This document shows, piece after piece, positions 42,164-48,001 of a stretch of DNA of 63,500 nt. Below the pieces are notes generated by a model, which worked only from the letters and a program-made list of their open reading frames with translations, was not told the DNA's origin and did no database searches. The stretch is from NCBI GenBank assembly GCA_013416795.1, contig RQSC01000757.1, positions 75,274 to 138,773 on the forward strand, read 5' to 3'. Position numbers and translations under genes: made by a program. The stretch is from Prasinococcaceae sp. CCMP 1430 (Eukaryota > Plantae > Prasinodermophyta). How positions within the stretch are numbered: position 1 is the first letter of the stretch; every line of letters starts with the position of its first letter.

Positions 42164-43118
42164 GTGGTGGCACGGGCGGCGGCGCGCACGGACGGCGCGG
42201 ACGACGACGCGACGAGCGGCCAGAAATCCGCTGGCGGCGGCATCGAGATAAGCCCGAAGCTGCTCACCGTGCTCGTGCCAGCGCTGGGGCTGGGACTGCT
42301 GCTTGCGGCCGCGCTTGGGTTCAAGGAGCAGCTGGTCGAGCTCTTCGGCCTATTTACAGCGCAACTCAAGCTCATGGGGCCGTGGGCGTGGCCTGCGTAC
42401 ACGCTGGCCTACTTTGCGCTCGAGGTGTGCCTCGTGCCGGCCATCCCGCTCACGATGAGCGCTGGCCTGGTGCTCGGCGTGGGCCCGGGCGTCGCGGCGG
42501 TGGCCGTGGGAAACGTGATGGCGGCGACGACGGCCTTCCTCATCGCGCGGACCTTCCTGCGTGACAAGGTCCGCGCCCTCGCCGAGAAGTCGGCCAGGTT
42601 CGGTGCCATCGACCGTGCCGTCGGCCGCGAAGGCTTCAAGGTGGTCGCGCTGCTCCGTCTGTCACCGCTGCTGCCGCAGGCCAACTGCAACGTACGTCGC
42701 CAGCGCTTGCGCTGGGGCAACACCTGCGCGCTCGCGCAGCGCTGCGGCGCCCGCAGCGCCTTGGGCGGCGCAGCGGCACGCCCGCCGCCCGCGCCACCCC
42801 CGTCGTTGTCGCGCTCGCTGACCCGCCGCCGAACCACAGTACCTGTACGGCGTCACCTCCATCAAACTCAGAGATTACGCCGCCGCCACTTTCGTGGGCT
42901 GCCTGCCAACGTCTTTCTTATACGTCAACGCCGGGCACCTGGGCCGCACCCTCGTCGAGGGCGCGAGCGAGGGTGGCGCGCTCGGTGGCTCGACGTGGAT
43001 AATCGGTCTGGGCGTGCTCTTCACTGCCGTCGCCACGACTTACGTCGTGAGGCTAGCGGACGCCGCGCTCAAGGCGGAACTCGACGACCCCAAGGCCGGC
43101 ACCCCGAGCGCCGAGTGA
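42164..43118 (+). CDS. TVP38/TMEM64 (VTT, SNARE-associated) membrane protein; intron 42692-42839; 5' end unresolved
   Basis: VCLVPAIPLTMSAGLVLG...FLIART...AIDRAVGREGFKVVALLRLSPLLP..N|YLYGVTSIKLRDY...GCLP. Confidence 0.85.
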
Positions 43119-43804
43119 GCGCGGATCATGCACACGTTGATGACATGGCGCACGCACGAGCTGCTCATGCCGAACAATCTCTCATGCCGAACAATATCTG
43201 CCGGGCGACGTTTTAAACACTCTTGCGCATCGCAGATTGGCACACGGACTCGCCTCATCGCGTGCGGCGCTCGCGGTTCGCCAGTGCATGCGCAGTCATG
43301 GATATGGACGCTTTGTGCCGCGTGCATGAGTGGCCAGAAGAAGTCCCGTCTAAACCCCTACAAGTTACGTCCCAAGAAGCTCTTCTAGCTAGAGCGAGGG
43401 AAACACAAAAGAGAGCGGTGGACACAATGAAGGTCATTGTGACCAGCGCAGCAAGAGACGCGCCAGGCCGCGCGGCCACCATTCGCTCGATGGTCAGCGA
43501 TGTGTGTGTCGGTGGTATTGGCGCAGCAGGCCGTCGCTGTCTCTCGGAAGTGGCGCGAGCCTGACCTCCAGGCGTTGGCACGCAAGTGCTCCGCTGTTCC
43601 TGCTGTAGCTGATCGCCGGAGGCTCTCTCGGAGGTCGTCGTCGAGCGTGTCTCGCAGCGAGGCGCGCGATGTCGCAGCGCCACGCGCGCACCGGGTGGGT
43701 GTGCGCGCGCTCGCGCAGAGATCTCGCAGACGTGGGTCGCGCGTGTCGCAGCGCCACGTCGCCGTGTCGCGCCACGGCGTGGGTGGCCACCAACCGTACA
43801 CGCC

Positions 43805-46534
43805 TCAGGCGTCCATCGGCGGCTGCACGTAGATCGTCTTGGCGCGCCCGGGCGCGAAGCCGTTGAAGCGCGACGCCGCCACGAGCGTGTACGCCCCCAT
43901 GTTGGGAAACTCGAGCCACTCGCCGACCTCCATCTTGGGCAGCTGTGCCTCGCGTAGGATGGTATCCAGGCCATCGCAGGTGGGGCCGAACACCGTCGAG
44001 CTGAGCGCGGCGCGATCACGGGCGGCGCCCTGCGCGAAGTCCTCCGCGTAGAGCGGGCGTGCACTGAGCTCGGCGTGGTCGTACAGCAGGCAGTTCATGC
44101 TGCCATAGATGCCATCCGCGATCCAGTACTCCATGGCCATTTCGCCGCCCGCGTTGGGCCTGGCGCGGCGACCAAAGATCGGCGCCGACAGCGACGCGAT
44201 GCCCTCCGCGAAGTAGCGGCCGGGCTCAGCAATGATACGCACGCCCATGGAAGGGGGGAAGAGCTCGTCGAGGGCCGCGTCCAGGTTGGCGGCGATGGCG
44301 CCGAAGTGCTTGATCTCCTCGGGCGCCTGACCGCCGGGGAAGCCTCCGCCGACGTCGAGGGTGCGCAGGGGCGAAAGGCCAAGGTGCGCGGCCATGTCGA
44401 ACACGCGGCGCGCGAACTTGACCGCCACCACCGGCGACGTGGGGTCCGAGAGCCCGCTGCCAACGTGGAAGGCCACGCCCTCGACGTCGAGGTTGAGCTC
44501 CTTGGCGAGCTTGAGCAGCGGTTCGCACTCGCTCTCGTGGACGCCGTACTTCGAGCCCAGCTCGCAGCGCGCGCCTGGGTCGTCCGCGCGGATGCGCAGG
44601 AGCAACTTGGCCTCGGGCCACGTCTCCGCGAGCTTGTACAGCTCCGACGCCGAATCGAACGTGGTCATGGGCACGCCCGCGGCGCGCACCTGCGTCATGT
44701 GCTTCGTCGTCTTCATTGCGTTGGCGAAGACGATGCGCTCGGGCGCCACGCCGTGCGCGGTCACCATGGCCACCTCGGCGGGGCTGGCGCAGTCGAAACC
44801 GGCTCCCAGCGCGGCCATCGTTGCGAGCAAGCCCTGGTCGTTGTTGCACTTCACCGCGTAGTGCGGCTCGACGCGCGGGAGCAACGTGCGCCACATCTCC
44901 CAGCGCTCCTGCAGCACGCCGAGGTTGACCACGTAGAAGGGCTCGTCGATGCAGTTCTTGGCGATGGCAGCCTTTGCGGCAAGGGCGGACGACTCGTCCA
45001 GGGTCGCGCCCTCGGCGTACACGGCGTTGAAGCTGGCGCCCACGCGCCTGATGGTCGCAAGCGTGTTGGCGCGGGCGGCGGGACCGAAGGCGGGCGCGCT
45101 CTTGCGCGACGGCAGGCGGCTGATGGCACCGACCTCGCTCGGTGCGGCGTAGTCCTCGATGGACGAGTCGTCACTCTCGCTGGCCCACATCGAGGAATCC
45201 GCGGACGCCGGCTCCAGGCACCGGCTGGCGACGGCGCCGCACATGGAGGTGCACGTGGTGATCTGAGGCGTCACGCGCTCGAACTGATGCATGACCACCG
45301 CACCGCCGCCGGGGAGCGTCTGCACCACCGTGTCGGCGATGGCGTAGCCGGTCGGGGGGCGCAGGCCGCCGATCTCTGCGGCCAGCACCAGCGCGGCCGC
45401 CGGATTGGCAGCCACGGCAGGGTACGCAGGCGCGTCGAGGGTGATGGCGGCGGTGATGCGCTTCGGGCGGAACGCCTTCGCCGAGTTGATGGCCACGCAC
45501 TCAGGATCCAAGGCGTCCAGCTCGAAGCCCGCGACCTCGACGCTCGCATACGAGCACGACTCTTGAGGGGTGACGTGCACGGTGGAGAAGCTGCCGCCCT
45601 GCAGGCCGTTCATCGAGTAGCCGTACGGCTCGAACAGGTGCTCGTCCACGCGCTCGGCGGGGAAGATCTTGAGCAGACCGAGCGCCTCTGCGGCGGTCTC
45701 GTAGCCGCTGTTCTGCGGCGCGGCCGGGGCGCCGGCCGGACCGCCGCAGCAGGCCTTCACCTCGACCGGGTCGAGGCCGGTCATGCACACCTCGAGGGTG
45801 TAGCGGCCGCCTCCGACGGCGTGCTCGGCCGCGGCGGGTGCGCCGGGAAGTGCGGGGCGCGATGCGCAAAAGACGTGCCAGCGCAGCGCCTCCGGGTCGC
45901 TGCCCTGTTCGCCGAGCACGTACGCGCGGCTCTTCATGCCCATCTGCGAGGCGATTTCGCGCAGGCGGACCGTCTCCTCCTTCTCAAAGCAGCGGTGGCC
46001 GGGATGCTGGCGATCGCCGTTGAGGAAGCTCGCGCGCGAGTACTTCACGTAGGTGACTTCCATGCCCAGCTCGGCGACGCACCGGCGCACCAGCGGCATC
46101 GCGTTGATGAGCGGAGTCTGGCCGCACGTCTTGATCACCATGCGATCGGCGGCGACGAAGAGGCTGCTCTCCGAGAGCACGTACGCGTCGTAGACGGCGT
46201 TGGAACACGTCGAGAGGACGGTGCACCCCGCGGCCTCGAGGAAAGCGTCGATCTTGTCGCGCGGGATGCGGCGAAGGCCACCGGCGGCGCTGCGCTCGGA
46301 GCGCATCATCCTGCCTGCGGCGCCGGCTGTGCGCGCATCCGCGAAGTCGGCGTGGATCTCTAGGCGCTTCTCGCTTCCCTCGAAGAAGTCGTCCTCGGCG
46401 TCCGACGCCATGGCCGCGTCCGCGGCCGGCGCCAGGGCGGCAAGGGCTGCGGCGACGTCGTCGCCGCGCCTGTCGTGGTGCGAGACCGGCACGCTAAGGC
46501 CGGTCTCGTGCATCCCGATTCCCATGGGAGGCAT
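43805..46534 (-). CDS. SAMDC-ODC: Bifunctional S-adenosylmethionine decarboxylase - ornithine decarboxylase fusion (909 aa, uninterrupted ORF)
   Basis: N-half: FFEGSEKRLE, YVLSE/SSLF (pyruvoyl cleavage at 46169/46168), IKTCG, GYSMN, STVHVTP. C-half: EPFYVVNLG, HYAVKCN (PLP Lys at 44849-44851), FHVGSG, LDVGGGF, AEPGRYF, LYDHA, FGPTCDGLD, NMGAYT. Confidence 0.96.
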   Translation of the reverse strand: MPPMGIGMHETGLSVPVSHHDRRGDDVAAALAALAPAADAAMASDAEDDFFEGSEKRLEIHADFADARTAGAAGRMMRSERSAAGGLRRIPRDKIDAFLEAAGCTVLSTCSNAVYDAYVLSESSLFVAADRMVIKTCGQTPLINAMPLVRRCVAELGMEVTYVKYSRASFLNGDRQHPGHRCFEKEETVRLREIASQMGMKSRAYVLGEQGSDPEALRWHVFCASRPALPGAPAAAEHAVGGGRYTLEVCMTGLDPVEVKACCGGPAGAPAAPQNSGYETAAEALGLLKIFPAERVDEHLFEPYGYSMNGLQGGSFSTVHVTPQESCSYASVEVAGFELDALDPECVAINSAKAFRPKRITAAITLDAPAYPAVAANPAAALVLAAEIGGLRPPTGYAIADTVVQTLPGGGAVVMHQFERVTPQITTCTSMCGAVASRCLEPASADSSMWASESDDSSIEDYAAPSEVGAISRLPSRKSAPAFGPAARANTLATIRRVGASFNAVYAEGATLDESSALAAKAAIAKNCIDEPFYVVNLGVLQERWEMWRTLLPRVEPHYAVKCNNDQGLLATMAALGAGFDCASPAEVAMVTAHGVAPERIVFANAMKTTKHMTQVRAAGVPMTTFDSASELYKLAETWPEAKLLLRIRADDPGARCELGSKYGVHESECEPLLKLAKELNLDVEGVAFHVGSGLSDPTSPVVAVKFARRVFDMAAHLGLSPLRTLDVGGGFPGGQAPEEIKHFGAIAANLDAALDELFPPSMGVRIIAEPGRYFAEGIASLSAPIFGRRARPNAGGEMAMEYWIADGIYGSMNCLLYDHAELSARPLYAEDFAQGAARDRAALSSTVFGPTCDGLDTILREAQLPKMEVGEWLEFPNMGAYTLVAASRFNGFAPGRAKTIYVQPPMDA

Positions 46535-46598
46535 GATGTGTCTATGCGTGTACTATAGACGGTGTAGGCTGTTGTCCGCTTCTCTCACGTGGGGGCTG

Positions 46599-46892
46599 TC
46601 AGCTGGGCGTTCGAACGCACTGTGCGTGACACGGTGGCCGAGCGGGCGGTGCGTAGGAGGATTCGCAGGGGCGCTTGCGTCAGCGTCCGCCCGAGCACGA
46701 GGCCGCGCGCGACTGCGGCGCTTGGGCCGCCGCTCGCGCCCCGCGGCGCGGAGCGCGCGCCCGCGCGCGACGCACGTCCGCGTACAGGTCGCTCTTGAAC
46801 TTCTCCTCCCCCCAGCACCTGATGTCCGCCACGTCCACGCACGTCACCTGGTCCCTCCTACTATTCGCGCTACTGCCGGTACTGTCCGCCAT
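46599..46892 (-). CDS. Intron-split upstream ORF (45 aa) resembling the plant AdoMetDC leader peptide, join(46776..46892,46599..46619)
   Basis: MADSTGSSANSRRDQVTCVDVADIRCWGEEKFKSDLYAD|CVRTPS*. The intron 46620-46775 has a GTGCGT donor, a GCTGAC branch site and a CACAG acceptor. The stop lies 64 nt before the main ATG. Confidence 0.85.
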
Positions 46893-48001
46893 GTGCGCGC
46901 CAGTCGTCGCAAGGGTTCCTTCCGGCTCGTCTGTGTGGGGGCCTCCCCCGGTCCCCGCCACGGGGTGAAAACGCCGCTGGGGTTGCTCGCCGCGGCCTTC
47001 GCGGCCGATGCACAAGGAAGGAGGGAAGAGGGGGGGGAGGGTCTGACAGGTTGGAGGCGGCGGCTGCCGGCGGCGGCTCGGCCAGCCCCGCGCCGCGCCG
47101 GCCACAGGTAACGGTTTTTCACCTCTAAAGGGTTTGTAATACGTATCATTTTGCACCGTATTGATACGTGTGGTCCGCGAGTGAGGTTGCGGTTCAGACG
47201 AGAGACGTAGTGGACTCCATCGTCGGCGCGCGCGGCCCGCGCGCGCGCGCCGCGCGCCGCTCCAAACCTAAACCTGTCCCCACGCGTGTGGCTCAATGTA
47301 CAGCATTCAAATGATGTGAAATGTAGACCCTTCATCCGGATGAACCGTAAGGGGCGGCGGCAGCACGCGCGCGCGCGATCGGTTCCGAGCCCGGCCGGCC
47401 CGCGCGGCCAAAATTCGCGGAGCGCGTAGCGCCCCAATCCCAAGCCGCGTTTCTTATCAAAATTCTGTCTTTTATGACATGTAATACCTACAGATTTATA
47501 TTTGACGTAAATATGTCATTTCAAGTGATTATTCGAGATGTTTGTGCGGATGGCGACGCCCTCCTGCGCGCAGCATCCTGCGCGCGCGCGCCGCAGACGG
47601 GGGGCGCCGGCCGCGCCAACCGCGCCACCGTCGCTTCATCAAAACGAGAAGGCATCGTCGTAATAAGGGTAGGAACCCTGCGAGATAAAAGACGCATCAA
47701 AAAGCGCCTTGGGCGCACCTCTGAGGAGCGAAATGGACGGCGGGTCAACGTGCATTCCAACCCCAACTCGAGCGGGGTGGCGTCGACACTCGCGAGATCG
47801 GAATCGCGTATGCGAATGCATCAACATGTAAACCCTATACCCTAAATAACGAAATGATGTGCCTACAGCACAGCAAATACAGTACTGTAAGGTGCGCCAA
47901 CCCTAACCCTCGCCCGCGGCGGCACACCACGCGCGGGCGGCGGCGCGCGGCGCGCAGCGCAGCAGCAGCGGTGCTGCTCGGCGAGCCGCCCGCGCGCGGC
48001 G

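Follow-up and report, generated by a model that had tools for sequence, protein, structure and literature searches.

A predicted bifunctional AdoMetDC-ODC gene with a probable plant-type leader uORF in a prasinodermophyte alga, and its fused relatives in the green lineage

The gene, its transcript and its leader

We analyzed a 63,500-nucleotide (nt) stretch of contig RQSC01000757.1 from the prasinodermophyte alga Prasinococcaceae sp. CCMP 1430 (hereafter the window), whose minus strand carries, at 43805..46534, a single open reading frame (ORF) of 909 codons plus stop, with an ATG start and no internal stop in the ORF listing of the window. This frame encodes a predicted 96.3-kDa proenzyme in which S-adenosylmethionine (SAM) decarboxylase, AdoMetDC, precedes ornithine decarboxylase, ODC; it matches the Pfam families SAM_decarbox (amino acids [aa] 49-419, E 3e-67), Orn_Arg_deC_N (aa 540-776, E 6e-70), and Orn_DAP_Arg_deC (aa 801-880, E 2e-14). 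An earlier note, made from the sequence alone, had proposed that a full AdoMetDC and a full ornithine-type pyridoxal phosphate (PLP)-dependent decarboxylase share one uninterrupted ORF. The frame itself, the Pfam and structure matches, and the RNA described below bear this out, and all eight motifs quoted there were located in the 909-aa protein (YVLSESS, 118-124; KTCG, 135-138; YSMN, 306-309; HVTP, 320-323; SESDDSSIEDY, 452-462; YAVKCN, 559-564; LYDHA, 817-821; TCDGLD, 852-857). The gene is very probably the Prasinoderma coloniale orthologue of the green lineage's bifunctional AdoMetDC-ODC, expressed as one mRNA with an intron in its leader and a plant-type upstream ORF (uORF) ahead of the 909-codon frame.

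Because DNA of ~70% G+C, as found here, also yields long ORFs by chance, ORF length alone is little proof of coding. An exact-sequence look-up placed the protein in a cluster with the P. coloniale gene model PRCOL_00001954-RA (954 aa) and a 909-aa MMETSP transcript protein, the latter identical to the window ORF over all 909 aa. The genome is that of P. coloniale. Tara Oceans metagenome scaffolds and Logan contigs also specify 902-aa proteins that are identical or nearly so, and the sequence is therefore not the assembly artefact of one project. The ~5-kb contigs bearing the protein were rejected as transcripts: the scaffolds are metagenomic (Tara), the Logan contigs come from ERR runs, and both attest the DNA in the ocean and not its expression. 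An uncultured marine relative from Tara (L007) carries the same fusion at L007:3422-6302. Taken with the Pfam domains, the RNA contigs, and the ratios of nonsynonymous to synonymous substitution (dN/dS) given below, the identical MMETSP protein and the ocean DNA copies led us to reject a chance high-GC ORF or an assembly chimera. An antisense ORF of 762 aa (44075-46363, plus strand) overlaps the gene, and ORFs of 100 to 270 aa occur in other frames; we rejected these as genes and regard them as shadow ORFs typical of DNA of this composition.

Contigs from four RNA or probable-RNA runs, belonging to three studies, were aligned to 43400-47400. Contigs X1 (3540 nt) and X2 (3564 nt, from an ocean metatranscriptome) are colinear with the window on 43400-46619 and again on 46776-47043/47054. 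All four runs contain the joint 46619/46776, at which 156 nt are skipped, and the skipped segment is bounded by GT..AG on the minus strand (ends GTGCGT...CACAG); because this splice is visible, the contigs derive from RNA. Within the ORF, the RNA contigs of the four runs show no joint, insertion, or deletion, and five of the six ORF differences in the ocean metatranscriptome contigs are synonymous. Leader, AdoMetDC and ODC domains, and no less than 400 nt of 3′ untranslated region (UTR) therefore lie on one mRNA. In these contigs this mRNA extends over 43400..47054 on the minus strand, with its 5′ end at ~47043-47054 and a 3′ UTR that continues past 43400; exon 1 (46776..47054) is 5′ leader and carries the opening 117 nt of the uORF, and the only intron (46620..46775) also lies in the leader. 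A local pile of short ocean-metatranscriptome contigs over the EPYGYSMNG codons (45601-45635) comes from other organisms and is not a feature of the gene, since other AdoMetDC genes cross-match there.

The same contigs bear on whether the two domains might instead be made as separate proteins, through separate transcripts or an internal start in the linker, so that the ORF would not be truly bifunctional. Such an arrangement would sit comfortably with a linker that is disordered and poorly conserved, and contigs are unable to reveal minor isoforms, transcript ends, or internal initiation. Nevertheless, in two independent runs single RNA contigs span the leader, both domains, and the 3′ UTR, and thus cross the linker, where the earlier note had proposed that cDNA be read. 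The linker also has no stop or frame change, and beyond M449 it lacks any further Met before the ODC core; the continuous frame is kept in >110 protein clusters and in the uncultured relative. We regard separate production of the domains as highly improbable and treat the ORF as encoding one fused protein.

The spliced leader contains a single AUG uORF, of 45 codons (46892-46776 joined to 46619-46599, minus strand), which we provisionally assign to the plant AdoMetDC leader-peptide type from the RNA splice and its similarity to PF08132 (AdoMetDC leader peptide; 23.0 bits, E 7e-5, just below the 25-bit cut-off). Its frame differs from that of the main ORF, and its stop lies 64 nt before the main AUG. 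The peptide ends in ...EEKFKSDLYADCVRTPS, also given as ...WGEEKFKSDLYADCVRTPS, directly before the stop, and a matching uORF end (...CWGEEKFKSAVYSDLIGYPS, then stop) lies upstream of the relative's gene, the two sharing the ending ...KFKS.(L/V)Y.D...PS before the stop. The PF08132 family was also detected in merged gene models of the Chlorokybus and Closterium fusions. Control of the enzyme would more likely be translational, through this uORF; uORF control has been described for the plant enzyme, SAMDC (PMC2811004).

The published 954-aa model (PRCOL_00001954-RA; EukProt P0121) has 45 additional N-terminal residues that begin as the uORF peptide does, and if it were right, the upstream peptide would be an N-terminal extension of the enzyme rather than a separate uORF. 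The splice observed in four RNA runs, however, leads to a stop after 45 codons in a frame other than that of the main ORF; the junction in the model differs from this splice, and the MMETSP protein starts at the Met of the 909-aa form. Because the uORF runs in another frame and stops 64 nt short of the main ORF, the published model is wrong at its 5′ end, and an enzyme extended in this way is scarcely credible. Recognition of a separate uORF thus provides a concrete correction of a published gene model, in which the uORF was wrongly fused to the coding sequence.

The two decarboxylase halves and their linker

The ODC domain (aa 482-909; 43808..45091, minus strand) is of the PLP-dependent, alanine-racemase-fold type, as identified by PF02784 (235.8 bits) and PF00278 (53.9 bits), both over threshold, and by ODC structures. 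Trypanosoma brucei and human ODC chains match aa 517-895 at E ~1e-98, whereas diaminopimelate decarboxylases match at 1e-23 or weaker. By alignment, Lys562 (44849..44851) is the Schiff-base lysine for PLP (Lys69 of T. brucei and human ODC), and Cys853-Asp854 (43973..43978) correspond to ODC Cys360-Asp361, which are contributed by the partner subunit; both positions are invariant in the fusions. ODC residues K69, D88, E94, R154, K169, and H197 align with K562, D581, E587, R647, K662, and H690, and the GGG loop, E274, R277, D332, C360, D361, and Y389 with G729-731, E770, R773, D819, C853, D854, and Y882; overall, 102 of 108 conserved ODC columns are kept. Asp332 and Asp361, present here as D819 and D854, bind the far end of the substrate and are characteristic of ornithine enzymes. 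With Asp in place of D332, ornithine is a better fit as the substrate than arginine. In the Chlorella-virus arginine decarboxylase homologue, the Asp at this position is replaced.

The AdoMetDC domain (aa 49-423; 45266..46390, minus strand) belongs to eukaryotic class 2 of the pyruvoyl-dependent enzymes, as identified by PF01536 (227.4 bits against a cut-off of 22.2, covering profile positions 2-343 of 343), by matches to the potato structure 1mhm (the best, E 2e-29) and the human structure 1msv (E 6e-26), and by a confident fold in the structure model. The self-cleavage site is predicted at E122/S123 (46166..46171), aligned with human E67/S68, where Ser123 would become the pyruvoyl group; none of L120, S121, E122, S123, and S124 varies among 40 fusions. 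In the same alignment, human F7, E8, and E11 correspond to F51, E52, and E55; L65 to L120; C82 to C137; F223 to F301; S229 to S307; H243 to H320; and E256 to E333, so that the catalytic and processing residues Glu8, Glu11, Cys82, Ser229, and His243 (human numbering) are all kept. The SAM-contact residues of human AdoMetDC are Phe7, Leu65, Glu67, Phe223, and Glu247 (PMC3686867), of which all except the last are retained (F51, L120, E122, F301). Of 74 columns conserved at ≥90% among 49 green AdoMetDCs, 62 are kept, and most of the 12 changes are conservative. In the putrescine site, human L13, F111, and D174 are replaced by R57, K164, and R244, compared with R, R, and V in potato. From this basic, plant-like fill we infer that the AdoMetDC half is plant-like and should not need putrescine.

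Several observations weigh against our reading of the gene as an intact bifunctional enzyme, in addition to what the RNA contigs cannot reveal and the subthreshold score of the leader peptide. The AdoMetDC half scores 185 bits against the NCBIfam equivalog TIGR00535, whose cut-off of 233 bits it does not reach. The ribose ligand Glu247 is replaced by Gln324 and Cys226 by Tyr304, at positions that are Glu and Cys, respectively, in 49 of 49 comparison sequences. The AdoMetDC half also sits on a very long terminal branch (2.31, versus a median of 0.33), and our literature search found no enzyme-assay, processing, or oligomer data for any green-algal fusion. The two substitutions, the long branch, and the low equivalog score could alternatively mean that, next to an active ODC, the AdoMetDC half has become by drift a pyruvoyl domain that is weakened, regulatory, or re-specialized. 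There are precedents in the dead prozyme of trypanosomatids and in bacterial SpeD homologues that have become ornithine or arginine decarboxylases, as described in PMC3253432 and PMC10407285. Against such drift, the cleavage motif, the catalytic Cys, His, and Ser, two Glu residues, and four of the five SAM contacts are retained, and Gln could still hydrogen-bond the ribose hydroxyls. A word search with the AdoMetDC half returned no second match attributable to P. coloniale, a weak point as only some of the matches are named, and function has been demonstrated for a P. coloniale aminopropyltransferase that requires decarboxylated SAM (PMC12803844).

Comparison with the uncultured relative points the same way. 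The relative's AdoMetDC and ODC domains share 79% and 77% aa identity with those of the window protein, with dN/dS of 0.24 and 0.21, respectively; such equal constraint on the two halves speaks against decay of the AdoMetDC domain. Q324, Y304, and Q139 are common to both proteins, and so the unusual residues are fixed in the relative too. We consider loss or change of AdoMetDC function unlikely and retain the reading of two working decarboxylases. Constraint is looser elsewhere, with 43% identity and dN/dS of 0.48 for the linker and 37% identity and dN/dS of 0.67 to 1.2 for the N-terminal extension. A gene caller had split the relative's fusion into 217 and 712 aa at an apparent intron of ~88 nt after the equivalent of E215; the window gene has no intron there, and an intron has therefore been gained or lost within the lineage.

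The proenzyme would cut itself between Glu122 and Ser123 to make its pyruvoyl cofactor, leaving a 12.8-kDa beta chain (aa 1-122) bound to an 83.5-kDa alpha-ODC chain (aa 123-909). Each ODC active site is completed across two chains, with Lys562 from one and Cys853 from its partner, and the ODC half is therefore expected to dimerize. Self-cleavage and ODC-driven dimerization are both reasonable inferences from the conserved residues, and together they make two copies of the beta plus alpha-ODC unit the likely assembly, as in Plasmodium. The protein would then supply both substrates of spermidine synthase, converting ornithine to putrescine and SAM to its decarboxylated form, by enzymes held at a fixed 1:1 ratio.

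An AlphaFold2 model built from 40 fusions (mean pLDDT, 79) has two confident domains, with aa 1-48 and 424-481 disordered. The N-terminal extension (aa 1-48; 46391..46534, minus strand) is predicted to be disordered (pLDDT <50); it is also poorly conserved, with low alignment occupancy, and evolves fast, as its dN/dS shows. The 58-aa interdomain linker (aa 424-481; 45092..45265) is likewise predicted to be disordered (pLDDT 28-33); among the 40 fusions its length ranges from 48 to 182 aa, and it is poorly conserved (majority fraction 0.15-0.31). The linker contains an acidic, Ser-rich patch, SESDDSSIEDY (aa 452-462; 45149..45181), which the earlier note had suggested might act as a PEST-like degron. 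The suggestion finds little backing, since the approximate PEST-type score of the window linker is 4.7 against the usual +5, and only ~7 of the 40 orthologues score above 5; given these scores and the poor conservation, we do not uphold a conserved PEST degron as a firm claim. Acidic Ser clusters do recur in most lineages (for example, SSDNSSDC, SDSEED, and SESSDY...SSDD), and the uncultured relative keeps the patch as WASSGSDASLEE, with the pattern WAS..D.S(I/L)E(D/E), despite 43% linker identity. Core chlorophyte fusions share the linker motifs SPRAVLK...PSFKT and SSDNSSDCG within an otherwise unconserved linker. The shared motifs and the acidic Ser patch may represent a short linear motif or a phosphorylation site, and a role of the patch as a phosphorylated element is possible.

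Comparison with known AdoMetDC and ODC enzymes

The Plasmodium falciparum AdoMetDC/ODC has an N-terminal AdoMetDC, a hinge, and a C-terminal ODC and forms a complex of two polypeptides; its AdoMetDC is not stimulated by putrescine, and the proposed benefit of the fusion is balanced output rather than substrate channeling (PMC3253432). The window protein probably works similarly. The two differ in size and in the character of the AdoMetDC half, however. The Plasmodium polypeptide is ~170 kDa (PMC3253432), compared with 96 kDa here, and the window AdoMetDC is plant-type, with its nearest stand-alone relatives all in Viridiplantae, a probable plant-type uORF, and a basic fill of the putrescine site. 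All stand-alone AdoMetDCs matched in the search with the AdoMetDC half are from Viridiplantae, and word-based searches with the full length and with each half returned only green-lineage fusions among the fused matches. From the plant-type AdoMetDC half and the uORF, an origin separate from that of the Plasmodium fusion is expected for the green fusion. PDB entry 9fos was tried as a Plasmodium sequence and rejected, as it is Leishmania ODC. The Plasmodium enzyme carries large parasite-specific inserts, and a small, insert-free fusion of 96 kDa might ease the study of cross-talk between the domains. The Plasmodium protein, in comparison, has resisted heterologous expression, and there is no structure of the full complex (PMC3253432).

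Land-plant SAMDCs (potato 1mhm; Arabidopsis SAMDC1) resemble the window AdoMetDC in their basic putrescine site and in a conserved leader peptide ending in PS before the stop but, unlike the window protein, have no ODC domain. Human and T. brucei ODC (1d7k, 1f3t) share 40 to 44% identity with the window ODC, which keeps all of their active-site residues, and in Foldseek the modeled ODC part aligns to human ODC with a TM score of 0.89; unlike these enzymes, the window ODC is tethered at its N terminus to AdoMetDC. It also has no long C-terminal tail, because the protein ends ~14 residues past aa 895, where its alignment to ODC stops, whereas human ODC chains reach 461 aa. The C-terminal tail of human ODC is the mammalian PEST degron.

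The first report of an AdoMetDC-ODC fusion in the green alga Micromonas was reportedly that of Green et al. in 2011. The Micromonas-type fusion has the same order as the window gene, with AdoMetDC, linker, and ODC in one ORF; cluster look-ups identified no Micromonas sequence among the fusion matches. Relative to other green fusions, the window copy comes from a third green phylum, Prasinodermophyta, shares 35 to 45% identity with the 40 fusions aligned, and has no intron in its coding part, and its AdoMetDC half is very divergent, including the change of E247 to Gln.

Fused and stand-alone relatives, and the neighboring locus

The full-length search returned >110 protein clusters in which the three Pfam domains recur in identical order, and the best full-length matches all share this architecture. 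Within Chlorophyta, the fusion occurs in Trebouxia, Micractinium, Nannochloris, Coccomyxa, Cymbomonas, Bryopsis, Tetraselmis, Nephroselmis, and Crustomastix; among streptophyte algae, it occurs in Chlorokybus, Klebsormidium, Mesotaenium, Spirogloea, Closterium, and Coleochaete; and one liverwort, Calypogeia fissa (P0085), also has it. The premise of the earlier note that such fusions are rare is therefore wrong for the green lineage. The layout is unusual in general and common in green algae, and the P. coloniale copy adds one ordinary example to a known kind. For this gene alone, then, the result is confirmatory, namely, a correctly read, expressed, and intact gene for a predicted bifunctional polyamine enzyme.

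The wide spread of the fusion seems to have been little noticed in the searchable literature. Literature searches by names of the fusion returned no paper, and broader searches returned only papers on Plasmodium or on polyamines in general. In a 2018 review, a single Micromonas pusilla accession appears, without remark, both as ODC and as SAMDC (PMC6356823, Table 2), and SAMDC is scored as absent in Chlorella variabilis (PMC6356823). This absence score suggests that the fusion is underrecognized, and in C. variabilis it was probably overlooked.

We built quick maximum-likelihood trees for each half (53 and 50 rows), with SH-aLRT support only. We omitted the ODC rows of Ephemera, Stephania, Caenorhabditis, and Operophtera, which had the appearance of tandem or merged models. 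The two trees agree broadly with the species tree, and both halves of the window protein fall among fused green sequences; the long branch of the AdoMetDC half makes its position uncertain. Of the stand-alone ODCs, which the ODC-half search found in plants and some algae, those of streptophytes and those of trebouxiophytes each adjoin the fused ODCs of their own lineage. AdoMetDCs of land plants and Chlorophyceae nest within the fused sequences, those of land plants inside the fused streptophyte sequences. Approximately unbiased (AU) tests rejected a single clade of stand-alone AdoMetDCs (p 1e-6) and a single clade of stand-alone ODCs (p 8e-8); the groups tested were named after the trees had been seen, the AdoMetDC tree has no non-green outgroup, and some stand-alone rows may be fragments. 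In Calypogeia fissa, the ODC half groups with fused streptophyte-algal ODCs, and the AdoMetDC half adjoins land-plant stand-alone SAMDCs.

With these caveats, the trees are read most simply as a single ancient fusion in the green ancestor, with duplications and domain losses afterwards. The copy in Prasinodermophyta, which branched off first among the green phyla, and the other green fusions together point to a fusion already present in that ancestor. On balance, we think it probable that a uORF-controlled fusion is ancestral to Prasinodermophyta, Chlorophyta, and Streptophyta and that the stand-alone SAMDCs and ODCs of land plants, Chlorophyceae, and Trebouxiophyceae originated afterwards, on more than one occasion, through duplication and the loss of either half. 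Descent of plant SAMDC and ODC from the fusion is thereby suggested, and, if this is true, fission would have given rise to the textbook plant SAMDC.

Further long ORFs near the gene have no Pfam match. The convergent downstream neighbor, at 42164-43216 on the plus strand, encodes a membrane protein with a VTT domain (TVP38/DedA-like); its listed ORF extends into an unlikely Arg-rich tail, and an intron or an earlier end is probable.

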